Translations under genes and position numbers: made by a program | Notes under the pieces: model-generated | The model's input: the letters and a program-made list of their open reading frames with translations, nothing else | Told to the model about the DNA's origin: nothing | Database searches by the model: none | Part shown: one piece after another, positions 1,649 through 44,512 of the stretch | Layout: the number at the start of each line of letters is the position of its first letter | How positions within the stretch are numbered: position 1 is the first letter of the stretch | Assembly (NCBI GenBank): GCA_965112735.1 | Contig: OZ218959.1 | Coordinates: forward strand, 744,001 to 808,000 | From: Phaeosaccion multiseriatum | Taxonomy: Eukaryota > Protista > Ochrophyta, other classes | Reading direction: 5' to 3' | DNA length: 64,000 bases

Positions 1649-3541
1649 CAATGCCGGCTTTGGGCATTTTTGATCCCAGCACAGAGCCAGATTGGGCCAT
1701 TTGAGCCCATCCAAGGCCCCACTTGGCGCTGTTGTGGCAATGTAGTATCTCAGTTGGGCCTGTTGCGCTGAGCCAATGCCCGGCGTGGGCATGTTGTGGC
1801 CAGCAAACGCGTCGTTCGGGCTGTGTGTGCGCCACAAATGCCGGCTTTGGGCATTTTTGGTCCCAGCACAGAGCCAGATTGGGCCATTTGAGCCCATCCA
1901 AGGCCCCACTTGGCGCTGTTGTGGCAATGTAGTATCTCAGTTGGGCCTGTTGGGCTGAGCCAATGCCCGGCGTGGGCATGTTGTGGCCAGCAAACGCGTC
2001 GTTCGGGCTGTGTGTGCGCCACAAATGCCGGCTTTGGGCTTTTTTGGTCCCAGCACAGAGCCAGATTGGGCCATTTGAGCCCATCCAAGGCCCCACTCGG
2101 CGCTGTTGTGGCAATGTAGTATCTCAGTTGGGCCTGTTGTGCTGAGCCAATGCCCGGCGTGGGCATGTTGTGGCCAGCAAACGCGTCGTTCGGGCTGTGT
2201 GTGCGCCACAAATGCCGGCTTTGGGCTTTTTTGGTCCCAGCACAGAGCCAGATTGGGCCATTTGAGCCCGTCCAAGGCCCCACTTGGCGCTGTTGTGGCA
2301 ATGTAGTATCTCAGTTGGGCCTGTTGTGCTGAGCCAATGCCCGGCGTGGGCATGTTGTGGCCAGCAAACGCGTCGTTCGGGCTGTGTGTGCGCCACAAAT
2401 GCCGGCTTTGGGGCTTTTTTGGTCCCAGCACAGAGCCAGATTGGGCCATTTGAGCCCATCCAAAGCCCCACTTGGCGCTGTTGTGGCAATGTAGTATCTC
2501 AGTTGGGCCTGTTGTGCTGAGCCAATGCCCGGCGTGGGCATGTTGTGGCCAGCAAACGCGTCGTTCGGGCTGTGTGTGCGCCACAAATGCCGGCTTTGGG
2601 GCTTTTTTGGTCCCAGCACAGAGCCAGATTGGGCCATTTGAGCCCATCCAAAGCCCCACTTGGCGCTGTTGTGGCAATGTAGTATCTCAGTTGGGCCTGT
2701 TGTGCTGAGCCAATGCCCGGCGTGGGCATGTTGTGGCCAGCAAACGCGTCGTTCGGGCTGTGTGTGCGCCACAAATGCCGGCTTTGGGCATTTTTGGTCC
2801 CAGCACAGAGCCAGATTGGGCCATTTGAGCCCATCCAAGGCCCCACTTGGCGCTGTTGTGGCAATGTAGTATCTCAGTTGGGCCTGTTGTGCTGAGCCAA
2901 TGCCCGGCGTGGGCATGTTGTGGCCAGCAAACGCGTCGTTCGGGCTGTGTGTGCGCCACAAATGCCGGCTTTGGGCATTTTTGGTCCCAGCACAGAGCCA
3001 GATTGGGCCATTTGAGCCCATCCAAGGCCCCACTTGGCGCTGTTGTGGCAATGTAGTATCTCAGTTGGGCCTGTTGTGCTGAGCCAATGCCCGGCGTGGG
3101 CATGTTGTGGCCAGCAAACGCGTCGTTCGGGCTGTGTGTGCGCCACAAATGCCGGCTTTGGGGCATTTTTGGTCCCAGCACAGATGCTTGAGCCAGCTTG
3201 GGCCATTTGAGCCCATCCAAGGCCCCACTTGGCGCTGTTGTGGCAATGCAGTATCTCAGTTGGGCCTGTTGTGCTGAGCCAATGCCCGGCGTGGGCATGT
3301 TGTGGCCAGCAAACGCGTCGTTCGGGCTGTGTGTGCGCCACAAATGCCGGCTTTGGGCATTTTTGGTCCCAGCACAGATGCTCGCGCCAGATTGGGCCAT
3401 TTGAGCCCATCCAAGGCCCCACTTGGCGCTGTTGTGGCAATGTAGTATCTCAGTTGGGCCTGTTGTGCTGAGCCAATGCCCGGCGTGGGCATGTTGTGGC
3501 CAGCAAACGCGTCGTTCGGGCTGTGTGTGCGCCACAAATGC
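1649..3541. repeat. Satellite block 1, ~10 monomers of 187 bp (188/194/195-bp variants)
   Basis: Tandem unit aatgccggctttgggc...gtgtgcgccaca; 187-bp periodicity in the ORF track. Confidence 0.97.
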
Positions 3542-3903
3542 TGTGCTATTGTCCTATACAGTGTTGGTCATACATTCAGGGGTCACAGAAATATGAGTGT
3601 AACCTTCATGGACACCCCTGACCCAGGGGGAACAGATAGAAAGCGTGTGGAGAGCACTCTTTTTCTTGCAAGCTCTAAGTGTGTAGTAAAGACTTAATAC
3701 GGACACCGACGCCCCACCAGAGGCGCGGCGAATACTTGGTCCAAACCCCTTAATCTTTTCTACGTCAGCTTAGCATAGAACTAGTTCTCGCATAAAGAGT
3801 TGCGAAAGAAGAATAACAGCAGTTGCAGGAGTTCTGAGGAGACGTCCAACGAGACTTCAGCAGCGACAGACATCAGTGCAGTCTTCTAGGGGAACCTAGG
3901 AGG

Positions 3904-5340
3904 ATGGTTACGCCTTCAGAGCAGGATAAGTATGACACCAGCGATTGGAGAGGAGATTGGCCGATTCTTAAAGGGCAGAAGACTCCGATCAGAGTGAACA
4001 CCTTTGTGTATGGCTATGAGAGGTGCGCAGAGAGAATGAGACTCGCTAGACAGCAAGCTCGCATTCCCGACATGGCTACTTTGTTGGACCCTGTTCTGAG
4101 AACGCAAGCCAGCGTTGAGTTAAAGGTACAGGTAACAGAGCTGAACACTGAGAACGTGAAGAAATGGCTCAAGGATTGGTTGAAGGAACATTCTGAGAGC
4201 GACGTGCAAGGAGAGACACTTGCATCTATTGCCGACGAGATCACGATAGAATGTGCGAATCGTGAGAACGCCGGAGCGCTGAAGGAGGCTTTAATATATG
4301 CCCACACGGAGTTTTTGGGTATGATCAAGAACAGCTCCTTCAGCTCCCTCTTGCAGACGGAGGATGGCACTGCAGACAATTGGTGGCTGCCCAAAGATAA
4401 GGCGGCTACGAAGTCCATCAGGTTTGCTTTCAACAGTGTCCTGAACCGATTTGATTCCAATATGGTGAAGCTCATTAAAGATGCCGAGAGACAGTGGCAG
4501 AGCTCGATTGATTGGGACAAGAACTACAAGCAGTGGTTTGAGCTCGTGATTGATATCCACATGGGGTGGGCTAATGCTCGAGCTGCTGCCGCGCGAGCGA
4601 ATCTCACGGCGGAACAGGCCTTGCCCAACTTGAAGAAGACGGGAGGAGGCGGCTCTGCTAATTCTGGAAAGGGGGGAGAGCCCGCCTGGAAGAAGAAGAA
4701 GCAGGAGCAGGCGGCGGCCAAGAATGGTGCAGCTGCAAGTGGTGGTTCGGTTGACGCGAAACCCAAGGAGGATGTTAAGCCTGCCGGAGGAGGGGGGGCT
4801 AAGGAGCCACGCCCTTTCTCTGGAAAGTGTCTTTCATGTGGGTTAGCCCACACCCTCAGGAAGTGCCCAACGACCTCCCAAGATCAGAAAGATCGGCTGT
4901 GGGCGGACTATAAGAAGAAACACCCGCACATTAAGGTCCTGGCATCAGCAGAGGCAGATGCAGGAGCCGTAGCAGAGGATGTGGAAGGGGAGAGAGTCAC
5001 AGTTGATCTCGTCGCCAACCCATCTGAGACGGTGTCGGAAGCCGCACGGCTGAAGATTTCCGCAGTTTGGGACTCGGGCTGTGATGTGGGGCTGGTTATC
5101 TCCCGCCGAGATGCAGACAAGTTTGTTGCGCTCGGGCGAGGTGGCGAGCTCACAGTCATTAAACCCCGGAGCCTCAAGACTGGAAATGGCCTGGTCGAAG
5201 CCACGCAGGTTTTGACAGGAGCGCATTTGTTGTTTGACTTTCCATGGGGGCCAGTGAGTACCCTTCAGATGGAAGAGAGTCTGCGCAATGCGTACGTGTT
5301 GGAGGAGATCGACATGATGTGTCTAGGTCGTCCTCTTTAG
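3904..5340 (+). pseudogene. gag: Gag-protease part of family B Gag-Pol (interrupted)
   Basis: Zinc knuckle CLSCGLAHTLRKC and protease WDSG; ends at TAG (CAG in the intact copy) at the insertion site. Confidence 0.9.
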
Positions 5341-8300
5341 AAAGCCTGTTCAGCAGCGCAGCAACGGAACTTTGTTTCTCGCGGAACAGAGACGAGGACG
5401 AGGTGGGAGACATGGGAGCCAGCAGGGCGAAGCGTCAGCGTAGGTGCTTGGTACCGCCCCAAGGGGGGGGTCCCCTCTGGGGAGATGTACAGTATGTCAG
5501 TGAAGCAGGGAATTTAGATTTTTCAGAAGAGGAGAGACCTTGGCGTGTGCTGTCACTTACTGAGGCGGCGGAGACAGAGCCCAGGAAGAGTGGAACACAC
5601 TGTCAAGGAGGAGAGTAGATACTGGTGTGGTGGAAAGCGAGCCTCTTGTCCTGGGCCCGGACAAAGCGCTTGTGTTGGCCAAGGGGATCCGCCTGGTGTT
5701 GCGAGCCGGGATCCTCGTGGAAGAGGGAGGAAGAGCTAGGGAGACTGTGTCTGGTGTTGCGTGCCGACAGTCTCCACGGTGTTGCGTGCCGGAACTCTTC
5801 TTTTCTTTCCTTTGCCGGTGTTGCGGGGCTCTATGGCTTGGGACAAGCGGTGTCTGGTGTTGCGTGCCGACCGCCTCCACGGTGTTGCGTGCCGGCGCCT
5901 TTTGCCCTCTGCGCCCTTTCTTCCTTGCTGGTATCGCCGTAGGATCCGCGTCCGGTGTTGAGGCCGACGCCCTACTCATCTCTCCGCCCTCTCCTCTCTC
6001 CCGTGGCCCAAGGTTTGGGGGGGGTGGTCCACGGCATTTTTTGTCTTTTTGCGAGGCGAAAGGGGCTCCCGGGTGACGGCAGGCCCCTTAGCTCTTCCAG
6101 GTGTCTGTCTGTATGTTTGTGTGTGTATGTTTCGACGGTGTTTCTGTGTGTAGGGTGCGTATTTCCTGTGTTTGGCGTGCGAATAAGGGCCTCCTCCACA
6201 AAGGAGGCTGGCTCTGCGCGCGGTGACAACAGCGGCTCATCCCTCGCCATTCCGGCCCTCAGCGGCGGGCGGGGCAGTCCCAGGCAACAGCAGCCGTGGT
6301 CACTGCCCCTACACACGATGTGTGTTTGTATCTGTGTGTGCTGGTCTGCGTCTGTGTGTGCTAGTGTGCGTTTGTGGGTCCTGGTGTCCCTGTATTGTGC
6401 CTTTGTCTATGTCTGTGTGCCTGTGAATGTTTGTGTACGTCTGCGTGTTTAAGTGTACCTCCCTTGTTGTTGGAGTGTCTCCCACCTACAACAGCAGTAT
6501 GGCCAGAAGGAGGCGTACGTGGTCGCCACTGGGCTTGCCTGCAGTCTCTCTGGATGGGTGGGGGCGTAGCTGACCTTCGATACGGGAGCTCGCACGGCTC
6601 ACCTCCGGCAGCTACATCCGAGAGACATATCGGGCCGAGGAGCGGCGAAGGGAAGGAGACGGACTACAGCTGTACCTCCCTCACCATCTCGAACGCATGG
6701 GAAGGGGAGGGGGGGGGTCCGATGGAGGCTCAGCTCTCAGGACAAACAGCAACCGCCAGGCAGTTAGTACGAGCGTCAAAGGTGGCAGCATGGATGCGAA
6801 GGCAGCTATTCGGGCTGTTGGAAGGAACCGGAGAGCCCTTTGATGGTGGTTGGCGCCTCTAGTTTGCGTGTGGAGCGGATATGGGACCTGTGGCCATAAC
6901 AGCGAACCGATGGGCGACAAGAGAGGCACAGCATACGAGGGAGAATTGGGAATTGGAAGGCGGCATTGGGAGTGCACGGTACTCGCATTTCGGGAGGTAC
7001 GGCAGCGTTTGGTGACCGTCTACGGAGTGTACGGCGATGTACGTCGTCCGGTGCTGAAGGAAATTGGGGCATTGAGCAATCTGGCTACTTATCTGTAATG
7101 GACGGCGGAAGCATGACGTTTGGTCGTCCACCACAGCTATGGAGTGGAAGTCGGGGCCTGCCTGTGATGCAGAAGAGAAGGTGATGGATTTTTCGGCGTT
7201 GGGGCTCGTGAGCGGTGTGAACATGGAGGATGGGAGAGAACAGGGCTTGTGGCTCGCTCTGCTTGCACGACCCACTTGCAGTAGTATGGATGGACTACCC
7301 TCTTGCTATCGTGCTCGGTGGTCGAGGGATTGATGCCGCCGCGCTTGAGATATTGGACTTGTTCATCTTTCGGGCCCGCAGCACCGAGGTGTTTTGCATT
7401 CGTTGTATTGCTCAGCTGGTACAGCGGAAGTCCGCGGCGGACGGTTGGAATCGCAGCGGAGTGGTCTTGGTACGGCGTGTGCAGAAGGGTAACTTCTACG
7501 AGTTGATGTTCGAAGAGCTTGGAGCGGAAACATGAGCGCTTCTGTGAGGGCATTTTCGGCTTTTCTACAGGGGTTGGATATATGGACACTTCTGGATCTG
7601 TGATTCCGGAAAGAATCCGAATTTGCTGGTTTGGGCGCGCTTTGCTGCTTCCACCAGCCGTGCCAGAGGACTGCGCAGTGTATTTCGCTCAGTGGCTCGC
7701 CTCCCCCCCAGCACACCATCCCAAGCGAGTGGGGGGTGTGTGATGGTCAGCAGGGGACGTGCGAAGGGACCTCTTCAAAGGACACTGACTCTGCCCGTGG
7801 CGACACCAGCGGCTCCTCCCTCGCCATCATTCCTCCCCCAGCAGCGGGGAGCGCAGCCCTTGGCAACAGCACCAGCAGCCCTACACCGGTACACGCGGCG
7901 GGTGTTTGTATGTGTGTGTGTACTGGTGTGCGTCTGTGTCTACTGGTGCCCCTGTATGTGTATTATTATGTCTGTGTGCGTATGAATGTTTGTGTATCTT
8001 TGTGTTTTGTGTACCGGCCGACTACGATCGGGAGAGTGGGCTCTCGACTAGGCTGGGGCAGGTGCTGCTGCACCCTCGCAGCGCACCGGTGGGTACTCGG
8101 ATGGGTGGGGGTGAAGCGGGACTTGGGGTGCTCACTGCGGTGGCACCCCAAGCTCCACTACATCCGAAACCCGGTGCCCGCCTCCCTCCATGGAGGCGGC
8201 CCCCTTGGAGGCGCTCTGCGCTCCCGAGGTGGGACTCCCTCACGGGACTGCCCCCCCCTACTAATGATGAGTCCTTCCCCCAACGTTAGCTACCCCTGGT

Positions 8301-9442
8301 CCACGACCTCTCCACCTGCGGAGCAGGTGGGCACTTGGGAGTCCAGCCCTATTCCTCTTGGCCTCGAACACGGCGTGGATGTGGATAGTCCTCAGCATGC
8401 ATACCGCGACGCCTTGGAGCGGGAGTCGGACATCTCCCGGGCCCTCGCCTACGACTGAAGGGAGGAGGCCTCTCACTGGCTTCCCACCTTCGCCCGAGCG
8501 CCGCGACCGCGCGAAAGCCTGTTCAGCAGCGCAGCAACGGAACTTTGTTTCTCGCGGAACAGAGACGAGGACGAGGTGGGAGACATGGGAGCCAGCAGGG
8601 CGAAGCGTCAGCGTAGGTGCTTGGTACCGCCCCAAGGGGGGGGTCCCCTCTGGGGAGATGTACAGTATGTCAGTGAAGCAGGGAATTTAGATTTTTCAGA
8701 AGAGGAGAGACCTTGGCGTGTGCTGTCACTTACTGAGGCGGCGGAGACAGAGCCCAGGAAGAGTGGAACACACTGTCAAGGAGGAGAGTAGATACTGGTG
8801 TGGTGGAAAGCGAGCCTCTTGTCCTGGGCCCGGACAAAGCGCTTGTGTTGGCCAAGGGGATCCGCCTGGTGTTGCGAGCCGGGATCCTCGTGGAAGAGGG
8901 AGGAAGAGCTAGGGAGACTGTGTCTGGTGTTGCGTGCCGACAGTCTCCACGGTGTTGCGTGCCGGAACTCTTCTTTTCTTTCCCACCCACCCACCCTCAG
9001 TCTTAGTTTTAGTTTTAGATACTCATACATTATGGGGGTGAAGCGGGACTTGGGGTGCTCACTGCGGTGGCACCCCAAGCTCCACTACATCCGAAACCCG
9101 GTGCCCGCCTCCCTCCATGGAGGCGGCCCCCTTGGAGGCGCTCTGCGCTCCCGAGGTGGGACTCCCTCACGGGACTGCCCCCCCCTACTAATGATGAGTC
9201 CTTCCCCCAACGTTAGCTACCCCTGGTCCACGACCTCTCCACCTGCGGAGCAGGTGGGCACTTGGGAGTCCAGCCCTATTCCTCTTGGCCTCGAACACGG
9301 CGTGGATGTGGATAGTCCTCAGCATGCATACCGCGACGCCTTGGAGCGGGAGTCGGACATCTCCCGGGCCCTCGCCTACGACTGAAGGGAGGAGGCCTCT
9401 CACTGGCTTCCCACCTTCGCCCGAGCGCCGCGACCGCGCGAA
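5340..9442 (+). mobile_element. Non-autonomous Ngaro-type (YR) element, family 1, A1-internal-B1-A2-B2
   Basis: A1 5340-5810 = A2 8513-8983; B1 8106-8515 = B2 9033-9442; GAA at both ends and at the B1/A2 junction; no intact RT or YR inside. Confidence 0.9.
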
Positions 9443-12400
9443 GGCTTTTGGACTATCATCCATCCGAGCCCAGTTCGAGACGATGCATAGCGAAGAAGCT
9501 TTGCGTCGCGAACGAGAGACTGCGGAGAAGGAGAAGGAGGCAGAGCCTCTTAGCTCCAGCGCAGGTAGAGTGATGAGTCTCTTTTCGTCAGCTCCCTCAG
9601 AGGAGAGTGACGATTTGTTTCCTGTTGAGCAGGGGACGGGCAAGACGCCCATAGTAGGATCGGTAGGAACCTACCACCTTAACAATGAAGAGATCAAACA
9701 GTATGACGGTGTAGCTGTTACCATTCAGCAACCTGAGGACGGACTGCCGCCCACATACGAGAGCCTAGAGGCACGTTTGGGGTCAGTCGTCGACAATGCT
9801 ATAGCAGAGCATGATTTTCCCGAGCGGTTGAAAGAACCGATGCTGAGGGCACTACTGAAGTGGCCTGACGTGTGGCGGGATGAGTTACTGTGGGAGGACG
9901 GTGCTGCTAAGGTTGAGCCGATGAAGGTGCAGTTCAAGAGCTCTGAACCACATTCGCAGCTCCCTATCAAGCAACCCGGTCCGAAGGCGGCCTTTGTGCG
10001 CGAGTTCACCAATAAAATGGTAGACAAGGGCTTTGGCTACAGCAACCCGCAGAGCGTGTATTCTAACCGAGCCTTCGCAGTGGGAAAGCCGGGAAAGCCC
10101 GGTAAGTACAGACTGGTGTGTGACCTTCGGGCAGCTAACGCAAACACAGTCAAGGTTGATTTCGGTATGACTGACACGGAGACTATCTCTCTCGCACTGC
10201 GAGGGGCCAGATGGTTTATTGAGATTGATGGCAAGGATTTCTTTTGGCAATTTCCGCTCGAGGAGTGGTGCCAGGAGCATTTCACTTACATAACCGCAGA
10301 CGCAAAGGTGACTCCTACGAGAGTACCACAGGGAGCCCTCAACTCAGCGGCATATGTGCAGGGTACCATGAGCGAGGTCTTTCGCGAGGAAGTCGGTAAG
10401 ACTCACGCTGTGTACATTGACAATATCGCCTACTGGGCTATCGAGGGTGAGGAGCTGGTCGAGAGGACCGAACTCACCATGGACAAGCTTCACGAGAAGA
10501 ACTTGAAGATGGGAGTCAGCTCATTCAGTTTCGGAAGTGAGTTGAAGTTCGTGGGCAGAGTGCATGACAGACATGGTACTCGTCACGATCCGGAGCGAAT
10601 TCAAGGTCTGACAGACTTGGGTACGCCGGAGACAGCGGGCGATCTGATGACGTTCCTGTGTGGAATACAGTGGTTCAACCGCTGGGTGAAAGATTTCGCA
10701 CAGTGGGTGGGGCCTCTGTATGACTTGTTGAATGAGTGTTTGGGGGAGGCTAATGCCAAACCGCATCAGCACAAGCGCTCTAAGGCTGTGGCTGCAACTA
10801 TTCAACTAGACAAGAGGTGGACAGCTGAGCATGACGCGGCTTTCTTGGGGATCAAGCGCGTGCTCGCAGAGAACACGGTGCGCGCTCACCCGGACCCTGA
10901 GCAGGTAGTACTAGTGTTTGCAGACGCCAGTGACCGCTACTGGGGGGGCATGATCGCACAGTGTAGACCCGAGAACGTGGGTCTTCCTCTTGACGAGATG
11001 GACATGGAGCCTGTAGCTTTCTGTTCAGGTGGCTTTGGGAAGCATGAGCTCAAGCGAGCAACTGTGGACAAAGAGGCAGATGCCACTTACCGGACTGTGA
11101 TTCAGAATGAATACGCTTTGGTAGGGGCGAGGAAGGTATACATTTTCTGCGACCATCGCAATTTGGCTTTTCTCTGGTCTAACGACCCACAGTACCCGGG
11201 TCTGACCAAACCCATGCGAGAGCGGCTGCAGCGACAGGCACTTCGATTGCAGGCATTTGACTATACAATCATGCATTTGCCTGGCGACAAGCACTTGTGG
11301 GCTGACCCTCTGAGCCGTTGGCGCAAGAGGACGAGCCATGCAGCGCCTTGCGTGTTGGCTCTACGAGGCGGGAAATTCGGAGCCATGCAGGTCTTTGACA
11401 TGATGGCGCCTGACTTTCTTTGGCCCACGGAGCAGGAGATTGTCAGCGTTCAGCAGGAGGCCTTTGCAAAGCTCCTGGACGCTGGCAAAGAGGTGGGAGA
11501 GAGTGGTCGCCAACTGCTTCTCTCACAGACTGGCGACGGCGGTCTGATTCGAGCAAAAAGTAGCACAGATGACAACGCTCAGCAGTCAAAGATTTGGATA
11601 CCGCGTAAGGCAGAGGACTTGCGCCTTCGGCTCAGCGTAGTGGCCCACCAGGGGGGCATGGGCCATCGTGGGATGACCAACACGCTGGAAGCTGTAGGGA
11701 AGGACTTTGTTTGGCATGGCCAGCAGGAGGATATCAAGCGCTTTGTGAACGAGTGTATTCATTGCCTTAGCAATGGCGTAGGGCTGCGCGTTCCTCGACC
11801 GCTTTTGGGTCAATGGCATGCTACCAAGCCCCAGCAGATGATATGGTTTGACTATGTCAAGATGGGCAAGGGTATCATTTGGGTTGATGGACCTGATGGG
11901 TTCATGCAGATTCAAGTACAGTACGCGCTATGCATTTTTGATGACTTTTCGTCCTTGACAATGTACGAGCCGTGCTATGAGGCTACCGCACGAGGGTGCG
12001 CGCGGGCTTTGCTGAGATGGTTTGCTCAGCATGGCATTGTGCCTCGATGGCAGAGTGACAGAGGCAGTCATTTCCTCAATGAGGTGATGAGCGAGCTGAG
12101 AGCAATGTTGAGGTGTGATCATCATTTTGTGGTGGCACATGCGGCTTATAGCCGTGGACTTGGGGAGCGCGGTGTGCAAACGCTTCAGAAGCTTATGCAG
12201 CCGCTACTATCAGAGATGAGGGCACTACCAGAGTCGTGGCCGCAGTTTCTACCAGTGGTCGAGTCCATCGAGAACAGTTGCACCAAGAGCAGTCGTTCCA
12301 GCAAGTCTCCGATTGAGCTGCATTCAGGCCATGTACCTCAGCGCCCTATCGACACGGTTATGCTTCATGATGCTGATCGAGCGCAGAAGGTGGAGTTGAA

Positions 12401-13118
12401 GCAACTCACACAAGCGCAGGTCGACACGATGGCTGAGGGGCTGCAGCAAATTCGGGAGCAGTTACGTACACGGGTCGAGGAGCACCTCTCCAAGATCAGG
12501 GAGCGCAAGCGTGATGGCATCAATGCGCGTCTGTTGCAGGGGCGGCGTGGCGCCGAGCACAGGAAGGATCTTGATCGCGCGCGCGAGCTCGCCAGCGAGT
12601 CAATTTTCCAACCTGGAGTATTTGTGACGGTGGCGTCAGTGGGGCCTACGAGCAAGGTCGTTGGCCGATGGCATGGTCCTTGCCGAGTGACTGAGGCTCT
12701 CGAGCACCACGTATATCGCATTGAGGAGTTAGTGGGACAGAAGCGCACTTTGGACGTGCACATCAACCGGCTACGCTACTACTGCGACAATGATGTCAAT
12801 CTTACTACCGACGTCCTCCACCAGATCTCACACAGCACTCAGAGTTTCGTAGTCGAGTCTTTTGAGGGGCTGGTTAGGCGTGCTGATGGCAGCTGGTTCT
12901 TAATCGTCAAGTGGAGAGGCTTCGACGCAGTCGAGAACAGCGAGGAGCCCATCGAGCAGCTTATGGCGGATACACCCCAAGCAGTGGAGCAGTATCTCGC
13001 CAAGCATCCGGACAAACAGCGAATCAGCGCAGTCCGAGCCTACTTGCGGGCCCTCTCGGAGCGGAACGCAGAGCGGGTAGTAGCGCCCAAGCGCAAGCGT
13101 ACGCGCAAGAAGCGGTAA
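9443..13118 (+). pseudogene. pol: Pol part of family B (RT, RNase H, integrase, chromodomain), separated from gag
   Basis: RT (LVCDLR, PQG, YIDN), RH (FADASD), IN (HHCC, WFD..SDRG..GER), chromodomain FLIVKWRGF; the ORF-track start at 9285 is read-in from Ngaro B2. Confidence 0.92.
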
Positions 13119-13421
13119 GCGTTGCGTTAGGTACTGGGATAGTTTCTTTCCTCTTTTGACGGCTCGGGCTGTCGCTTGGGGGTAGTGTGCTATTGTCCTA
13201 TACAGTGTTGGTCATACATTCAGGGGTCACAGAAATCTGAGTGTAACCTTCATGGACACCCCTGACCCAGGGGGGATAGATAGAAAGCGTGTGGAGAGCA
13301 CTCTTTTTCTTGCAAGCTCTAAGTGAGTAGTAAAGACTTAATACGGACACCGACGCCCCACCAGAGGCGCGGCGAATACTTGGTCCAAACCCCTTAAGCT
13401 TTTCTACGTCAGCTTAGCACA

Positions 13422-14225: not shown

Positions 14226-16013
14226 TGTTGGAAGGCCTCAGAGTGAGAAGGACCATAAGTCAATGGTCGGTGTGTCCTATATTACGTAGATTCTGAGTGG
14301 AGGAGGACGTCAGAACGGTGATCTTGGTATAAGGAGAGCCTAGCAGCAGGGCTTGCAAACGGGTTCCATCCCATATACTATATCAAGTGTTACCACTTGT
14401 CTAAGCGGCTTAGGTCGCTTTTACAACCCGTTTTGACACAATTGCTGGTGAGGATATCCGAAAAACAAAGGAAGGAGAGGAAGGAAGGACAGGACCGGGA
14501 AGGCAGGAGGCACACAGGCCATCTAGGACCAAACTCGGAGGCGGTAGGCAGTACCAGCACACGGCCTACAGGGGACAGTGGCTGCCACAGCGGTGGGCAG
14601 AGGATAGGCAGCAGGCAGGGAGCGAACAGCAGAAGCGGCATAGCAGTGTGGAGGTGACGTGAGGGGCGCTCGGTCGGCCACAGCGGCACCCATGGCGGAT
14701 TCTCCCACCAGTGTGGTCCCGAGTGGTGTTCGGACTCGCGCCCAGCGCGCTGCCGCTGAGGAAACACGTGCTGCAGGCGAGGCTTCCCTGACGGGGGCGA
14801 GCACGGGCCTTTGGGGGCAGCGGTTCCGAGGAGCCGCTCATCCCCCCCTTAACTACTGCTGAGTATCTAACTACCCAGTACTAAAACTAATCTAGATGGG
14901 TGGGTGGGTGGAAAAGAAAAAACCTTGGGCTAGACGTGAGGACCATCTTCACACACGTAATCAAGCCCAGGCTCTCAAACTTCTACTAGATGCGTGTGCG
15001 TAGCGCAAGCCCTTGCGACAGTTAGCATTGGGGGCACCTCATGTGTTTGCGACAGGTAGCATGACACAAGTAAGCACACAGCATCTTCACCCTCACAAGA
15101 GAAGCAGTCGGGCCCTACTGCGATCCTTGCTTTCCTACACCATCAGTCTCTACTCTCCTCCCTGCTTGGCTGTACACGCTCCCGCACCTGCTCTCGATCT
15201 CCTCCAATCACGGTAGCGTGGCGAGTACAGCAGGGCTCCTCCTCTTCTGAGCTCCAGCAGAAAATCCAAATCCGCTGTTTTCCATCTGCTGCCATAAATA
15301 TACTTTCTATCCTACCAGCTCCCTCGGGGTCCACGCACACGCGCTCACGCTCCCCCCTCCTCGGCTCTCAATACCCTGTTTCTCCGTCGACTCCACTCTG
15401 CGAGAACAGAACTTCCGTGGCTTCGCTGCTGAAGCAGCGGGCACCCATGGCGGATTCTCCCACCAGTGTGGTCCCGAGTGGTGTTCGGACTCGCGCCCAG
15501 CGCGCTGCCGCTGAGGAAACACGTGCTGCAGGCGAGGCAACAGCGACGGTCACGCCCCCATCTACTCCTCGTACGTCAGGATTTCTCCAGCGTCTCTCTG
15601 GTGGTCTCACTGGGTTCCTCTCTCGGCAGTCGGCGGCCCTCTCGGCGGCTGACGAGGCGGAGGTGGACGCTCAGGCTGAGCGGGATGTGGACCGGGTTAT
15701 ACAGGCGGGCGATATGCATGCGGCTGCCCTCGAGGCTGATGCCGCGGCTGGAGCGGTGGAGGAGGAGGAGGAGGAGAATTCGGAGGAGGAGGAGGAGGAG
15801 GAGGAGGAGAAAGGAGGAGGAAGGGACGGCTTCGGCGGCAGCGGGGATGGCAGGGGGTACTGTGGGCGCTGTGGCAGACGGCAGGGCTGCGACTGCTGCA
15901 GCCCCGACGGTAGCGGAGGCAGCGGGCGGCATCGCTGTCGGTGACGGGTTGGGGGTGCAGCAGCGGTTGCTAGCGGCTCAGATGTTGGGGCTGCAGCAGC
16001 AGATGGCCAGTTT
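14226..16013 (+). mobile_element. Probable 5' fragment of another LTR element (family C): candidate LTR ~14226-14440 plus a low-complexity gag-like N-terminus (ATG 14692/15448)
   Basis: Starts tgttgg at a satellite break; possible end ...gacaca 14440; Ala/Glu-rich frameshifted ORF; no second LTR to confirm. Confidence 0.4.
14784..15440 (-). mobile_element. Ngaro family 3 fragment (A2 plus start of B2) flanked by a 98-bp direct duplication
   Basis: Minus strand begins ccgctgcttcagcagcgaagccacggaagtt (homologous to the A-repeat start of families 1/2) and has the ccacccaccc..ttagttttag A2 end; duplication 14686-14783 = 15441-15538. Confidence 0.75.
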
Positions 16014-16015
16014 GC

Positions 16016-16819
16016 ATGCTTCGTCAGCTCACCAATCTCACCCGAGGCTGTGGTACGGGTCGTTTTGCCGGGCGTACGAAGCTCTTTCTGGACGACGACG
16101 CCCTGTTCGACCTCCAGCGCTGGCGGCATCTTATCTGCGTGTGGGGGGTGAAAGATCCCTCTATCCTGGTGTGCCCTTTGGAGCTACTAGTCCCTCGCCA
16201 ACCGGACGTTTGCCTCGACGGAGACGCGTCTGACTGGGGAGGGGGAATTGTATGGGCAGAGGCCTCCATGTTCGCACAGTGGCGCTGGCCTGCGGAGGTA
16301 GTAGCCCGACACCATACGGTCCCGAAATTGATCACTGTAAACGATTTGGAGATGGGCGTGATCGTTACGGGCCTCTGCACCTTCTGGCTCCAACATCCAA
16401 CAGCTTTCGACCTCTCAGCGGTGCTAGTGCGTGGTGACAACACCAGCAGCTTGTCCTGGGTAGAGAACCAGGGGGCCCCCAACAGCTCCATCAGCAACGG
16501 CTTGGCAGGGCTGGTGGGCCTCCTGGAGATCGGTGCTCGGTGCAGACTCGACACCGTCCATGTCCCCGGACGCATCAACCTTATCCCCGATGATCTCAGC
16601 CGTGATTGGATTGAAAATCTCATCGGAACTGACCGCTCCTCCCCCATTGCCCCTCACCTACAGCCCCTCACTCAGTGGACGCAAATCATGCCGGACTCAA
16701 TCGTTTTGGACGCGGTCTTCTCAGCTCTGCTCGGGCAGCCGCAGCAAGCGGTCTCCGCCCTAGCACCCTGGATCGCTACTCATCGGTCCAACGTCAATGG
16801 ATGGAGTTCTGCCAACTAG
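16016..16819 (+). pseudogene. C-terminal RT/RNase H fragment of Ngaro-2
   Basis: DGDASDWGGG, NDLE, RGDN, HVPGRINLIPDDLSR motifs. Confidence 0.88.
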
Positions 16820-17805
16820 TGGAGGTACCACCTCTACTTTTCGGAGACGATGACCCCCGGAACTCGGAAATCTTCATGGCTTTTCTGGCGTGGTGTCGTG
16901 AGGAGAAGGGCAACAAGGCGGCGACGTTGGAGGGGAAGGGACCGGCGGTGAATGCTCTGTTTTCTCGGGAGGGGATGAAAGGCCCCGCGGTGGGCAAGCA
17001 GGTGCAGTTGGTTCTCCGGAGTTACAGACTCACCGATGGCGACTCCATCCCGCAGCTTCCGGTGGATGTAGCTCTTCTAGAGGCTACCAGAGGCGTGCTC
17101 AGCACGGAGGGGAGGAAGGGTACCATGCTCTGGGCGCTCATCCGGTTGGGGTGGTTTTTTCTGATGCGTGTGAGCGAGTTTGCCCCCTCCAATACGAGGG
17201 GGAACACAGACGTGCGCTACATCCTAACCCCCCCCGATGTCTCGTTCACAGACGCCTCGAACCGGGTCTACTCAGGGAGAGAAGCCCTTGCAGCCGTCGG
17301 CCGAGGGGTGCGGATGCTGCGCGTGACTTTGGCTTTCACAGGCAGCAAGACAGATGCGTTCAGGAAGGGAGAGGCACGTACGCACCAGAGGACAGGCGCC
17401 CCCACGCTTTGCCCGGTACTCGCTGCTGTAGATGCGCTCCGCTGCCACTTCGGCGGAGAGCAGGTACGCCCTCGAGAAGTTGGGGAAGGGCACACTCTCC
17501 TCGCTTCCTACATCGACGAGACGGGGCGAAGGACATCCGTCACTTCCCACCAGGTCAGCAGAGCCCTCAAGGCGGGAGCAACGAGAGCTGGGAGGGACCC
17601 CAACCGGATCAGCGCTCACTCCCTGCGGAGTGGAGGTGCTACAGCCCTTGCAGCTGGCGGAGCAGACTGGCGCGCACTCCAGTTTTGGGGGCGCTGGTCG
17701 TCGACGACGGCTTTCCAGTACGCCCACAGGACAGTCCAGGAGGCTCTTGGCTGGGCGGGCCGCATGCTGACGGCGGATACGACTCCCCCACAGGTACACG
17801 GATGA
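16675..17805 (+). CDS. Tyrosine recombinase of Ngaro-2 (start codon uncertain)
   Basis: FLMRVSE...SKTD...SAHSLRSGGAT...GRWSS...FQY catalytic residues. Confidence 0.92.
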   Translation: MDANHAGLNRFGRGLLSSARAAAASGLRPSTLDRYSSVQRQWMEFCQLVEVPPLLFGDDDPRNSEIFMAFLAWCREEKGNKAATLEGKGPAVNALFSREGMKGPAVGKQVQLVLRSYRLTDGDSIPQLPVDVALLEATRGVLSTEGRKGTMLWALIRLGWFFLMRVSEFAPSNTRGNTDVRYILTPPDVSFTDASNRVYSGREALAAVGRGVRMLRVTLAFTGSKTDAFRKGEARTHQRTGAPTLCPVLAAVDALRCHFGGEQVRPREVGEGHTLLASYIDETGRRTSVTSHQVSRALKAGATRAGRDPNRISAHSLRSGGATALAAGGADWRALQFWGRWSSTTAFQYAHRTVQEALGWAGRMLTADTTPPQVHG

Positions 17806-19113
17806 AAGGGGGGTGAAGCGGGGCGTAGGGCACTCACCATGGTGACTTCCCTACCTTCCGCTACATCCGAAATGCAGTGTCCGCCCTCTGTGATAGAAGC
17901 GGCCTTCTTCTGAGACCAACTGGCCTCCGAAGAAGGAGCCCCTCACAGGGCTGCACTCTCCTAATGAAGAGTCCTTCCCCCAACATCCCAAGCTCTTGAC
18001 TCACCGGCGCCCCATTCACAACTGACGACTGTGTGGATGAGGAGCCCTCCCACTTGCTCACTCACAGCTGGCGACGCCCTGGATGTCGAGGTCCGTCACT
18101 TCCCGCGACGACACTGAGGAGCACCTGTTCTTCCCCCGGCTCTCGCCGACGACAAGGGAGGAGGCCCCTCACCGCATTCCCGCCCCCACCCGAGCGCCAC
18201 GACGGCGCGAAAGCCTGTTCAGCAGCGCAGCAACGGAACTTTGTTTCTCGCGGAGCAGAGACGAGGGAGTGGGCGGGAGGCAACGAGGGCCCGAGGTGCA
18301 GTGCCGCGGCCGGTCCAGCCCCGAGGGGAGCGGCCTCTCCCCCGGGGAAAACCCATATACTTGCAGATATTACTCTTGTACCAAACTTAGGAATTTAGAA
18401 GAGGAGGAGCCTTGGAGTGTGTTGCCGCCTACTGAAGCAACGGAGCCAGTGCACAGGTAAGGCGGGACACACTGCCAAGGAGGAGAGGTAGATACTGGTG
18501 AGGCGGAAAGCAAGCCTCTGTCCCGGGCCCGGGCAGAGCGCTTTGTGTTGGCCAAGGGGATCCGCCTGGTGTTGCGAGCCGGGATCCTCGTGGGCGAGAG
18601 AAGGAGAGATAGGGAGACTGTGCCTGGTGTTGCGTGCCGGAACTCTTCTTTTCTTTCCCACCCACCCACCCTCAGTCTTAGTTTTAGTTTTAGATACTCT
18701 TTATTAACTACGGGGTGAAGCGGAGCGTAGGGCACTCACCATGGTGACTTCCCTACCTTCCGCTACATCCGAAATTCAGTGTCCGCCCTCTATGACGGAG
18801 GCGGCCTTCTTCTGAGACCAACTGGCCTCCGAAGAAGGAGCCCCTCACAGGGCTGCACTCTCCTAATGAAGAGTCCTTCCCCCAACATCCCAAGCTCTTG
18901 ACTCACCGGCGCCCCATTCACAACTGACGACTGTGTGGATGAGGAGCCCACCCACTTGCTCACTCACAGCTGGCGACGCCCTGGATGTCGAGGTCCGTCA
19001 CTTCCCGCGACGACACTGAGGAGCACCTGTTCTTCCCCCGGCTCTCGCCGACGACAAGGGAGGAGGCCCCTCACCGCATTCCCGCCCCCACCCGAGCGCC
19101 ACGACGGCGCGAA

Positions 19114-23081: not shown

Positions 23082-23295
23082 TGAGCCACCTGGAATGTGG
23101 GACAGACCACACACCCCAGACAACCAACAAGCAAGGGGTTCTTATCCTATGTAGAGCGTGTATTAGCTTTCCATATCAATCTCACTTTCCTATCTATCCT
23201 CCTCCTGCGACATGCCGTTCATATGAAGCTCGAGTTCCCCAAATGGCGACAATCCGGATTCGAACATACCAAACACCTTTGAGACTCCACAACTT

Positions 23296-24612
23296 GTGTC
23301 GTCCGAGATGAAACCGCTGTGTACTCGCAATGCTGTCTGCCAACGACCCATGCCTTCCTTGCTCGCTGCGCCCCTCCTGTTGTACGGGGCTTCTCTGTTG
23401 TGGCCACAGGTGGAACAGCCGCTTCACACGCCACCTCGAGGCGTCAACCACCATCAAAGCAGAGCTCACCGGTTCCTTGTCATAGCCCGAACACCTGCCC
23501 CGTATCCATGCGGCCGCCGCTGCCACACTCACGAACTCCTTCGCCGTGGCTCCCGAGGCTCTTGCTGCTTGGCTGAGAGCCCCTTTTCACTCACTTCTGC
23601 TGCTGCCCTTCTCCCACACGCAAAACGTCTCCAAAGGCGAGGAAGAGGAAAACAAGGCCACCTCCCAGCGATCCTTTCGCAGCCATAGCACTCACTCCCA
23701 TACTACACACCAACTGTCCGTGCGCCCGTGCCCTCCGGCTGCAGCGACACCACTGCGCGCTGCTGCTGCCCACACAATACCTCCCCCCCTGAAAGCCCCC
23801 CCTGAGTCCACCTGCCCTGTTGCATCTCCGTCGGATACGATCGTCGATACGTGGGGCTCTCAGCTGCGGCATCTCCGTCCAACACGATACGCGGGGCTCT
23901 CATCACCATCAGGACCAGCCACGGCGGGAGGATCTTTCACCCCCCAACCTAAAAGATCCGCCACCGCCGCAGCGACGCCACAACCAGGCGGGCTGGGGAA
24001 GGGAGGAGACGGAGAGGCTGGGGTGGACGGACCCCGCGAAACTAATGGAGAGGAAAGGGCGACGAGCTAACGTGGAAGCCCCGTCACCGGCGAGAGAAGA
24101 AAGAAAAAACCTTTTGCCCGGCGAGAGCTCCATACTACACCAGGCTAAGGGTCTCTCACTTCTACTAGATGCGTGTGCGTAGCGCAAGCCCTTGCGACAG
24201 TTAGCATTGGGGGCACCTCTTGTGTTTGCGACAGTTAGCATGACACAAGTAAGCACACAGCACCTTCACCCTCACAAGAGAAGCAGTCGGGCCCTACTGC
24301 GATCCTTGCTTTCCTACACCATCGGTCTCTACTCTCCTCCCTGCTTGTACACGCTCCCGCACCTGCTCTCTATCTCCTTCAATCACGGTAGGGTGGCGAG
24401 TACAGCAGGGCTCCTCCTCTTCTGAGCTCCAGCGGAAAATCCAAATCCGTTGTTTTCCATCTGCTGCCATAAATATATTCTATCCTACCAGCCCCCCTCG
24501 GGGTCCACACACGCGCTCACGCTCCACCCTCCTCGGCTCTCAATACCCTGTTTATCCGTCGACTCCACTCCGCGAGAACAGAACTTCCGTGGCTTCGCTG
24601 CTGAAGCAGCGG
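23296..24612 (-). mobile_element. Ngaro-3 non-autonomous fragment (A1, RH remnant, cargo) flanked by a 71-bp direct duplication
   Basis: 24163-24612 matches 14983-15440; 23770-23980 resembles the RT/RH at 120-270; duplication 23225-23295 = 24612-24682. Confidence 0.72.
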
Positions 24613-26855
24613 AAGCTCGAGTTCCCCAAATGGCGACAATCCGGATTCGAACATACCAAACACCTTTGAGACTCCACAACTTCCCCCCCCCAAGGCCGAG
24701 GCCAACCAGCCAAGGACTGAGAAAACTGTGGGGCGAAAAGGAGCAGCGCACACACAAACCTCTAATAGAACTATAGCAAACCAATGGGGAAAGAAACAAA
24801 GTCCAAAACCCCATGCATCTAGCAGCAGGCAAAGCAGCAAAGCATCCATATTCTAAAGCGTAGCACCAACTTCTTCAGCAAACAAAAGAAAATACCGGTG
24901 TGACACAACACCAAAAAGAAAAATGAGAACAACCACATACTAACCGACCCGTACCCGTTGTGCACACAGCGAGCTGAAGCATGAATACCGATCAATGCCA
25001 ACCCCCCAAGTCGTAGCGCCAGCAGTGTTGCCTCCAAAAGAAAATCAAGCTCGCGAGTTCCAGAAGAGTTGATCAGACCCTTCGCAATAAGCAGCAGTAG
25101 CAGTAGCAGCAATCCCATCAATAAAGCAAACGAAATCCCAAATGCGTGCAGCGAATCCTCGTCGCAATGTGTGTCACCAAAGGACGGCAATACCTCCAAA
25201 CAAAGCCGCAAGTAGAGCAGCATAATCCAATTTCCATAGCAAGCACCAAGTAACCAGCTCCAGCAGCATCCATACGGCATATACATCGCGAAAACACTGC
25301 GAAATCCGCTGACAAGGCGGGCATAAACAGCAAAGTGCGTCCGATGCAGCAAATTCAAATTCTTTTCGGAATCACAGATCCAAAAAAGCCCATATAACCA
25401 ACCCCTGTAGAAAAGCCGAAAATGCCCTCACAGAAGACACTCATGTTTTCCACTCCAAGCTCCTCGAACATCAACTCGTAGAAGCTATCCTTCAGCATAC
25501 GCCGTACCAAGACCACTCCGCTGCGATTCCAATCGTCCGCCGCGAACTTCCGCTGTACCAGCTGAACAATACAACGAATGCAAAACACCTCGGTGCTGCG
25601 GTCCCGAAAAACGAACAAGTCCAATATCTCAAGCGCTGCTGCACCAATCCATCGACCACCGAGCCCGATCTCAACTTGGTGGAAGCTGAGGGATTTCCTT
25701 TTGTTGTGGCCGAGCCGGTGAGAAAAAGAAATTTAGCAAATCAGCACAAAATAAAAAGCGGGGGGGAGATTTTGGAAACGGTTCCAATGGCCAAGGCGGG
25801 AGGACCCCGAAAAGGTGCGGGGCCGCGGCGCCCTGTGGGGGCTGCATCTTCGGGTGTGCTGGAGCGCCTTTCATCTTCCCCACCACCAGCGGGCGCTCGT
25901 CCTTCTCGTCGAGCTCCTCCGCCGGTGAGCCACCTGGAATGTGGGACAGACCACACACCCCAGACAACCAACAAGCAAGGGGTTCTTATCCTATGTAGAG
26001 CGTGTATTAGCTTTCCATATCAATCTCACTTTCCTATCTATCCTCCTCCTGCGACATGCCGTTCATATGAAGCTCGAGTTCCCCAAATGGCGACAATCCG
26101 GATTCGAACATACCAAACACCTTTGAGACTCCACAACTTCCCCCCCCCAAGACCGAGGCCAACCAGCCAAGGACTGAGAAAACTGTGGGGCGAAAAGGAG
26201 CAGCTCACACACAAACCTCTAATAGAACTAGAGCAAACCAATGGGGAAAGAAACAAAGTCCAAAACCCCATGCATCTAGCAGCGCAAAGCAGCAAAGCAT
26301 CCAGATTCCAAAGCGTAGCACCAACTTCTTCAGCAAACAAAAGAAAACAACTGTGTACAACACCAAAAAGAATAATGAGAACAACCACATACTAACCGAC
26401 CCGTACCCGTTGTGCACACAGCGAGCTGAAGCATGAATACCGATCAATGCCAACCCCCCAAGTCGTAGCGCCAGCAGGGTTGCCTCCAAAAGAAATCAAG
26501 CTCTCGAGCTCCAGAAGAGTTGATCAGACCCTTCGCAATAAGCAGCAGTAGCAGTAGCAGCAATCCCATCAATAAAACAAACCAAATCCCAAATGCGTGC
26601 AGCGAATCCTCGTCTCAATGTGTGTCATCAAAGGACGGCAATACCTCCAAACAAAGCCACAAGCAGAGCAGCATATTCCAATTTCCATAGCAAGCACCAA
26701 GTAACCATCTCCAGGAGCATCCATGCGGCAGATACATCGCGAAAACACTGCGAAATCCGCTGACAAGGCGAGCATAAACAGCAAAGTGCGTCCGATGCAG
26801 CAAATTCAAATTCTTTTCGGAATCACAGATCCAAAAATGCCCATATAACCAATCC

Positions 26856-38413: not shown

Positions 38414-38818
38414 TTCGCGCCGTGGTGGCGCTCGGGTGGGGGCGGGAATGCAGTGAGGGGCCTCCTCCCTTGTCGTCGGCGAGAGCCGGGGGAAGAACAG
38501 GTGCTCCTCAGTGTCGTCGCGGGAAGTGACGGACCTCAACATCCAGGGCGTCGCCAGCTGTGAGTGAGCAAGTTGGAGGGCTCCTCATCCACACAGTCGT
38601 CAGTTGTGAATGGGGCGCCGGTGAACCAAGGGCTGGGGATGTTGGGGGAAGGACTCTTCATTAGGAGAGTGCAGCCCTGTGAGGGGCTCCTTCTTCGGAG
38701 GCCAGTTGGTCTCAGAAGAAGGCCGCTTCCATCACAGAGGGCGGACACTGCATTTCGGATGTAGCGGAAGGTAGGGAAGTCACCATGGTGAGTGCCCTAC
38801 GCCCCGCTTCACCCCCTT

Positions 38819-39949
38819 TCATCCGTGTACCTGTGGGGGAGTCGTATCCGCCGTCAGCATGCGGCCCGCCCAGCCAAGAGCCTCCTGGACTGTCCTGTGG
38901 GCGTACTGGAAAGCTGTCGTCGACGACCAGCGCCCCCAAAACTGGAGTGCGCGCCAGTCTGCTCCGCCAGCTGCAAGGGCTGTAGCACCTCCACTCCGCA
39001 GGGAGTGAGCGCTGATCCGGTTAGAGTCCCTCCCAGTCCTCGTTGCCCCAGCCCTGAGGGCTCTGCTGACTTGGTGGGAAGTGACGGATGTCCTTCGCCC
39101 AGTCTCGTCGGTGTAGGAGGCGAGGAGAGTGTGCCCTTCCCCAACTTCTCGAGGGCGTACCTGCTCTCCGCCGAAGTGGCAGCGGAGTGCGTCCACAGCA
39201 GCAAGTACCGGGCAAAGCGTGGGGGCGCCTGTCCTCTGGTGCGTACGTGCCTCTCCCTTCCTGAACGCATCTGTCTTGCTGCCTGTGAAAGCCAAAGTCA
39301 CGCGCAGCATCCGCACCCCTCGGCCGACGGCTGCAAGGGCTTCTCTCCCTGAGTAGGCCCGGTTCGAGGCGTCTGTGAACGAGACATCGAGAGGGGTTAG
39401 GATGTAGCGCACGTCTGTGCTCCTCCTCGTATTGCAGGGGGCAAACTCGCTCACACGCATCAGAAAAAACCACCCCAACCGGATGAGCGCCCAGAGCATG
39501 GTACCCTTCCTCCCCTCCGTGCTGAGCACGCCTCTGGTAGCCTCTAGAAGAGCTACATCCACCGGAAGCTGCGGGATGGAGTCGCCATCGGTGAGTCTGT
39601 AACTCCGGAGAACCAACTGCACCTGCTTGCCCACCGCGGGGCCTTTCATCCCCTCCCGAGAAAACAGAGCATTCACGGCGGGTCCCTTCCCCTCCAACGT
39701 CGCCGCCTTGTTGCCCTTCTCCTCACGACACCACGCCAGAAAAGCCATGAAGGCTTCGGAGTTCCGGCGGTCATCGTCTCCGAAAAGTAGAGGTGGTACC
39801 TCCACTAGTTGGCAGAACTCCATCCATTGGCGTTGGACCGATGAGTAGCGATCCAGGGTGCTAGGGCGGAGACCGCTTGCTGCGGCTGCCCGAGCAGAGC
39901 TGAGAAGACCGCGTCCAAAACGATTGAGTCCGGCATGATTTGCGTCCAC
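38819..39949 (-). CDS. Tyrosine recombinase (Ngaro-2)
   Basis: R..HSLR..GRW..Y motifs; near-identical to 16675..17805. Confidence 0.92.
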   Translation of the reverse strand: MDANHAGLNRFGRGLLSSARAAAASGLRPSTLDRYSSVQRQWMEFCQLVEVPPLLFGDDDRRNSEAFMAFLAWCREEKGNKAATLEGKGPAVNALFSREGMKGPAVGKQVQLVLRSYRLTDGDSIPQLPVDVALLEATRGVLSTEGRKGTMLWALIRLGWFFLMRVSEFAPCNTRRSTDVRYILTPLDVSFTDASNRAYSGREALAAVGRGVRMLRVTLAFTGSKTDAFRKGEARTHQRTGAPTLCPVLAAVDALRCHFGGEQVRPREVGEGHTLLASYTDETGRRTSVTSHQVSRALRAGATRTGRDSNRISAHSLRSGGATALAAGGADWRALQFWGRWSSTTAFQYAHRTVQEALGWAGRMLTADTTPPQVHG

Positions 39950-42162: not shown

Positions 42163-42177
42163 CGTGCCAGGGCCCCC

Positions 42178-44094: not shown

Positions 44095-44512
44095 TCAACA
44101 CCGGGGAGGCGGTCGGCACTCAACACCAGACACCGCTCCTAAGCCGTAGAGCCCCACAACACCGGCAAAGGGAAAGAAAAGAAGAGTTCCGGCACTCAAC
44201 ACCGTGGAGACTGTCGGCACTCAACACCAGATACAGTCTCCCTATCTCTCCTTCCCTCGCCCACGAGGACCCCGGCTCTCAACACCAGGCGGGTCCCCTT
44301 GGCCAACACGAAGCTCTCTGTCCGGGCCCAGGACTGAGGCTCGCTTTCCACTACCCCAGTATCTACCTCTCCTCCTTGGCAGTGTGTCCCGCCTTACCTG
44401 TGCACTGTCTCCGTTGCTTCAGTAGGCGGCAACACACTCCAAGGCTCCTCCTCTTCTAAATTCCTAAGTTTGGTACAAGAGTAATATCTGCAAGTATATG
44501 GGTTTTCCCCGG

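Follow-up and report, generated by a model that had tools for sequence, protein, structure and literature searches.

Truncated Ngaro-3 pieces with one exact terminus and long target duplications point to a possible second entry mode for these retroelements in Phaeosaccion multiseriatum

Retroelements carrying a tyrosine recombinase (YR) integrate without target duplication according to the published model (PMC3266345), and the complete copies analyzed here agree with it. How did a piece of such an element come to lie between two identical copies of a 99-bp host segment in the genome of Phaeosaccion multiseriatum? The piece belongs to the Ngaro-3 family and is located in a 64,000-nucleotide stretch (C10:744001-808000; the genome comprises 67 Mb in 22 contigs), hereafter called the window, to which all positions without a contig name refer. 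This region combines a 187-bp satellite with Ty3/gypsy chromoviruses and several YR retroelements in a mosaic.

The Ngaro-3 piece, designated E1, spans positions 14784-15439 (656 bp) with its sense on the minus strand and is bordered by identical target copies at 14685-14783 and 15440-15538. The first copy contains the ATG of a host gag gene at 14692, and the host gag ORF resumes in the second. In five paralogous host copies (L059-L063), the duplicated stretch occurs once, free of insert and with the same flanks. Therefore, E1 is an insertion accompanied by a long target duplication, as the preliminary description of this locus had held, rather than a pair of abutting fragments. An exact 99-bp repeat with copies 755 bp apart in non-satellite DNA cannot be due to chance. 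The repeat measures 99 bp when the G at 14685/15440 is counted as target, and the 98 bp given previously applies if this base is split off as one extra G. The previous start and family identity of the piece stood, while its end was shifted from 15440 to 15439 and its length from 657 to 656 bp.

Read in sense orientation, E1 comprises the A repeat from its base 1 (15439) over 528 bp and a 62-bp linker, and it ends 65 bp into the B repeat (at 14784); it is 98.6%-98.8% identical to Ngaro-3 copies on C12 and C7. Its right end, with the last bases GAAGCAGCG on the window plus strand, is the A terminus to the base. This end had been placed within about 2 nt of the A boundary; the location was right, but the coincidence is in fact exact, as at least 17 unrelated upstream flanks meet the same A start, CGCTGCTTCAGCAGCG. 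The left end lies 65 nt inside the 222-bp B, whereas other copies run on through 157 bp more of B, so that the far end is indeed arbitrary within B as first described. For the same reason, the interval 14782-15439 was rejected as a defined unit with boundaries common to all genome matches, because it gives only the limits of the window copy. The reported cagcg(g) microhomology between the A end and the target is present, but it lies one base out of register: it amounts to 5 nt (cagcg) with the extra G and strictly to 0 nt. At the non-A junction, 2 nt (GC) are common to the piece and the target.

Comparison with the paralogs identified the host of E1 as the 5′ part of an LTR retrotransposon on the plus strand (14227-16017), comprising an LTR of about 200 bp, a leader, and the start of gag. 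The paralogs begin at a common left boundary (14226/14227) and extend over more than 7 kb, and their ORFs give weak, sub-threshold matches to a zinc knuckle and an aspartyl protease. In the window, the host breaks off at 16015-16017, where it abuts a 3′ part of another YR element, Ngaro-1 (16015-19113, the reverse complement of 40609-38414). The composite of host and Ngaro-1 part is placed between two 187-bp satellite blocks; when examined for duplication, the flanks of the composite (14227-19111) were 97% alike, no better than ordinary satellite monomers.

Ngaro-3 was reconstructed from genome copies, with the segment map taken from a tandem dimer on C7. Its 3′ end reads, in sense order, B1 (222 bp), A2 (528 bp), linker (62 bp), and B2 (222 bp). 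In L024 and L030, B1-A2-B2 directly follows a YR ORF, forming the split direct repeats of the Ngaro type; the layout A1-[ORFs]-B1-A2-B2 was checked for Ngaro-3 at this B1-A2-B2 part, an autonomous A1 lying outside the loci examined. The neighboring YR protein is 68% identical to the recombinase of the window Ngaro-1, and because its gene by the repeats has the strand opposite to the window orientation of the insert, the sense of Ngaro-3 corresponds to the window minus strand. The extreme 5′ terminus of A (15424-15439, minus strand) is a 16-nt palindrome with a 6-bp stem and a 4-nt loop, and the hairpin is present in both the minimum-energy and the centroid folds. The end of B (..GCGAGAA) is likewise sharp, being followed by 13 unrelated downstream flanks. 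Besides solo A-linker-B units of about 800 bp, Ngaro-3 has a non-autonomous form, A-internal-B, of 2675 bp that occurs in tandem arrays. The array at C7:861717-867874 (L008, L007, and L003 merged) is a head-to-tail dimer of the 2675-bp form, with units 99.97% identical, followed by A2-linker-B2; C3, C6, C9, and C16 carry similar arrays whose periods are 2.0-2.7 kb and about 0.8 kb. In addition, at 3548-3636 of L017 (C16, about 519788-519876), another A start is directly preceded by a tandem repetition of the initial 62 bp of A; no target sequence lies between this short A-anchored piece and the next A start.

The window also contains Ngaro-1 and Ngaro-2. As determined by self-comparison and junction sequences, the split repeats of Ngaro-1 occupy 17810-19113 on the plus strand (B1, 17810-18211; A2, 18212-18711; B2, 18712-19113), with a B of 402 bp and an A of 500 bp. 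The YR ORF upstream of B1 (16675-17805) matched Pfam PF00589 with 27.8 bits (cut-off, 27.1; E value, 2.6e-6), in keeping with a YR in place of a DDE integrase. A 785-aa ORF of Ngaro-1 (39805-42162, minus strand) gave no reverse transcriptase or RNase H match in Pfam, PHROGs, and PDB sequence searches; by eye only, a reverse transcriptase-like ..HGDD.. in place of YxDD and an RNase H-like HVPG..N..DDLSR were seen in it. A complete, gene-less Ngaro-2 of 4.1 kb (about 5343-9442) interrupts the chromovirus copy at 3541-13421, with A1 at 5340-5810, B1 at 8106-8515, A2 at 8513-8983, and B2 at 9033-9442. Its empty site is found in the intact chromovirus at 48305-54085, and the 3-nt GAA core shared by element and target is not a true duplication.

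Complete Ngaro-3 copies conformed to the published integration mode. The complete solos in L009 and L026 are exact insertions in satellite monomers with 0 bp duplicated, and a third complete solo A-linker-B, in L013 (C16:514193-517829, reverse complement 1343-2137), has a 9-bp satellite direct repeat, TTTTTTGAG, at its flanks. These values (0, 0, and 9 bp) support the earlier statement that YR retrotransposons integrate without target site duplication, and they indicate that the long duplications go with truncated pieces. Thus, E1 shares its element family and A terminus with the products of canonical Ngaro/DIRS integration, in which a YR recombines circular cDNA (PMC3266345, PMC8547959), but it departs from them in having only the A terminus, a B cut at position 65, and a 99-bp duplication.

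The recurrence of this signature was examined in a census of the window and 63 further loci, mostly chosen by similarity to A, in which an A-terminus flank recurring beyond the piece was sought. This tabulation of A termini, as proposed in the preliminary description, yielded four events with a fixed A end and duplications of 44-263 bp; the sample is small and was found via the duplications, so that events without duplication are missed and B-anchored events are under-sampled. The second event, E2, is the one at 23296 that had been named as a companion of E1. It spans 23296-24611 on the minus strand (1316 bp), begins at A position 1 (24611), and comprises A followed by about 790 bp from the internal region of the non-autonomous form, where its far end lies. 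The 71-bp target duplication in an LTR-like repeat is identical at 23225-23295 and 24612-24682, and a paralog at 26069-26139 has the stretch once with the same flanks. E2 matches L028 and L029 over its full length, its A part is 100% identical to copies on C6 and C3, and its terminal bases are those of E1. E3 (C6:2352287-2353004; 718 bp) has its far end at B position 141 and a 263-bp duplication with two mismatches in a 177-bp satellite, and it was later amplified inside a 2384-bp higher-order repeat. E4 (C16:505801-505879; 79 bp) has its far end at A position 79 and a 44-bp duplication with one mismatch in a low-copy repeat, and its empty paralog is located at C16:774927-774970. Empty-site paralogs were thus available for three of the four events (E1, E2, and E4).

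All four pieces start at A position 1 to the base, while their other ends all differ, and not one base of donor flank or upstream B1 sequence is included in any of them. Microhomology at the A end was 0 (or 5 out of register), 0, 1, and 0 nt for E1, E2, E3, and E4, respectively, and at the other end 2, 1, 0, and 1 nt; a possible 3-nt filler occurs at the E3 junction. Between E1 and E2, the A parts agree at 94.7%, but each has other genomic copies that match it at 99%-100%, indicating that the two came from different donors. Unlike canonical copies, which have both termini and no duplication, E1-E4 thus combine one terminus, an arbitrary other end, and a duplication of 44-263 bp.

Two other loci had been listed as companions of the same kind, and neither can be kept as such. 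The event at 38414 is real, but it has the opposite geometry: this Ngaro-1 copy (38414-44512, minus strand) has a precise 3′ (B) end, an A1 truncated at about position 131 at its 5′ end, no A2-B2, and a duplication of 5 bp (TCTCA). The one at 20310 is just a 13- to 14-nt motif in a satellite variant, whose duplication is not separable. The motif, identical to the Ngaro-3 A terminus, occurs in one of the four 187-bp monomers of a 780-bp higher-order repeat (at 20313, 21093, 21873, and 22653). It was rejected as an insertion of the A-anchored class, as it replaces about 9 nt of the monomer and the flanks keep the ordinary satellite phase; it could reflect micro-insertion, conversion, or chance. 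No event of the E1 type was found at the termini of Ngaro-1 and Ngaro-2, of which three lie in the sequence examined. In a sampling that favored A, none of 13 distinct B flanks showed the mirror arrangement of a long duplication around a piece whose B end is precise, and a genome query with B only returned mostly complete copies.

What kind of template could give pieces that all stop at the same base? As all four pieces, although from different donor subfamilies, lack donor flank and B1, we infer that the template physically ended at A position 1; this speaks against the copying of a chromosomal donor. This bears on DNA-level replication template switching of the FoSTeS/MMBIR type, in which replication would switch to a chromosomal Ngaro-3 copy and back. 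An insert between duplicated copies with short microhomology is a known signature of such switching and is what we see here. A chromosomal template, however, has no end at A position 1, where four of four pieces stop; the end fixed to the base points to an extrachromosomal template instead, and we regard DNA-level switching as improbable.

The reading that we favor, and to which we give about an even chance, is a recombinase-independent insertion of Ngaro-3 RNA, or of its first-strand cDNA, copied to the 5′ end. The template would be a replication intermediate of Ngaro-3 with a free end at the first base of A, either RNA on which reverse transcription reached the 5′ end or the linear first-strand cDNA produced in this way. 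A nick, a gap, or a nascent strand would supply a chromosomal 3′ end, which would join the template, or prime on it, at an arbitrary internal site, and synthesis would run off where the template ends. The new strand would then re-enter the chromosome 44-263 nt behind the place that it had left, and this offset would become the target duplication. Template jumps and end joining would match the microhomology of 0-2 nt and the one possible 3-nt filler. A ready-made linear cDNA would give the same product as copying primed by a host 3′-OH. In this scheme, the kind of template (RNA or cDNA), the enzyme, the sequence in which the joins form, and a transcript 5′ end at A position 1 are inferred.

Such run-off copying has partial precedents. 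DIRS-1 is known to accumulate linear single-stranded antisense cDNA able to integrate (PMC7192593), which speaks for the run-off route in that it provides a plausible molecule with defined ends that can enter the genome. That paper concerns complete retrotransposition needing the internal complementary region, and truncated insertions with duplications are not described in the sections consulted. Ty1 cDNA intermediates are captured at chromosome breaks, also with little or no homology at the joins and with a preference for intermediate ends (PMC11372161). This capture, however, involves no long target duplication and was described for LTR elements rather than recombinase retroelements. In our events, the targets are intact and, compared with the empty sites, duplicated on both sides, and the long duplications argue against plain double-strand-break capture. 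Target-primed reverse transcription of LINEs likewise produces target duplications, one template-fixed end, and near-blunt joins where synthesis finishes. The polarity is reversed, though: truncation affects the 5′ end of LINE copies, whose 3′ end is preserved, whereas the Ngaro pieces keep the 5′ end and vary at the 3′ end; they also lack a poly(A) or other 3′ tail, and their duplications (44-263 bp) are several times the usual LINE length.

Several observations count against run-off copying. In the classical DIRS model (PMC7192593), the transcript starts inside the terminal repeat. One would therefore not expect transcription to begin at the recombination point, unless its promoter is situated in B or downstream of the start. 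We saw none of the non-templated bases typically left when synthesis runs off a capped RNA; the sole possible extra base, that of E1, is G in cDNA polarity, not C. An HDV-like or other self-cleaving ribozyme could place an RNA 5′ end at A position 1, but an Rfam search of the A terminus with E values up to 10 returned only two chance-level matches, and this absence of a known 5′ ribozyme also weighs against the run-off reading. The first base of Ngaro-3 A is C; in 5′ self-cleaving ribozymes the first base is usually G.

The exactness of the A end is also what sustains the main rival to run-off copying, a recombinase half-reaction. The YR would cut the B/A junction of a cDNA or circle and attach its A side, precisely, to a single cut strand of the target; the second exchange would fail, host repair or replication would join the remaining side at random, and displacement synthesis would duplicate the target. 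To the base, the pieces begin where canonically integrated copies have their terminus, as found at 17 or more flanks, and the A-end joins are blunt and precise in four of four events. The B/A junction motif is conserved in all three families (Ngaro-1, Ngaro-2, and Ngaro-3), Ngaro-2 having used a 3-nt GAA core shared with its target, and the Ngaro-1 copy at 38414-44512, with its precise B and truncated A, could be a mirror product. None of the four target sites, however, resembles the junction core, and cDNAs with an internal B/A junction are required. Moreover, we know of no tyrosine recombinase that gives long duplications, which we count against a half-reaction. Altogether, we consider it unlikely, at roughly one chance in a handful.

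The sites of insertion bear on a further explanation, in which a chimeric cDNA is made in a virus-like particle: the reverse transcriptase of an LTR element would jump to co-packaged Ngaro RNA and back 99 nt behind, and the chimera would then be integrated. Both E1 and E2 sit in LTR-retrotransposon sequence, and retroviral reverse transcriptases are known to make double jumps that leave duplications. E3, on the other hand, lies in the 177-bp satellite and E4 in another low-copy repeat, the chimeric host copy of E1 is unique in the genome, and a Ngaro RNA ending at A position 1 would be needed even so. We therefore hold a particle-made chimera to be improbable, if marginally less so than DNA-level switching. 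Least probable of all, and only barely conceivable, is an artefact or a two-step rearrangement, that is, mis-assembly or a normal insertion reshaped later by ectopic recombination. The region is extremely repeat-rich, which would favor either. Nevertheless, the signature recurs at four loci on three contigs, the duplicate copies have since diverged in E3 (two mismatches) and E4 (one mismatch), and E3 was amplified within its higher-order repeat; a two-step origin of E1 would require that precisely the following 98 bp of target took the place of the 157-bp B stretch.

If the pieces record the 5′ end of a replicative RNA, the opposite end might be recorded as well. B position 141, the far end of E3, is an endpoint of Ngaro-3 in three independent junctions on C6 and C1 (L014/L015/L019, L010/L016, and L030), located 14-19 nt past an AATGAA motif. 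The autonomous copy in L030 has a B2 that stops at B141, straight against a 165-bp satellite. Such an endpoint would be compatible with an RNA 3′ end located in B2, which is what the DIRS model predicts, and E3 might then be a complete copy of a solo element transcript. A poly(A) tail after B141 in L010 and L016 was considered and rejected, as the A-rich run appears to enter an inverted Ngaro-3 A fragment.

Taken together, the insertion signature is real and recurrent and has apparently not been described for a recombinase retroelement, and it points to a possible second entry mode for these elements. In its full form, to which we give somewhat less than an even chance, this would be a second, recombinase-independent route of YR elements, in which chromosomal 3′ ends are extended on or joined to RNA or first-strand cDNA. 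It would leave 5′-complete, 3′-variable copies with duplications of 40-260 bp, and these fossils would map the ends of the replicative RNA, the 5′ end at the first base of A and the 3′ end near B141 in B2.

The priming of reverse transcription, the RNA ends, and the route of cDNA to the chromosome are still largely models for DIRS/Ngaro elements, and on these questions we found experimental work only for DIRS-1 (PMC7192593). Insertions with one exact common end and long duplications are a natural record of a replication intermediate and its non-canonical entry. Should the fixed end be the RNA 5′ end and B141 its 3′ end, one could test directly what the split direct repeats are for; RNA ends so mapped would show which part of the split repeats must be rebuilt in replication. 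If, instead, the recombinase made the precise end, these insertions would be the first candidates for products of a half-reaction in a eukaryotic recombinase retroelement. Either way, such copies would be misread by annotation pipelines built on the assumption of "no duplication" for this order.
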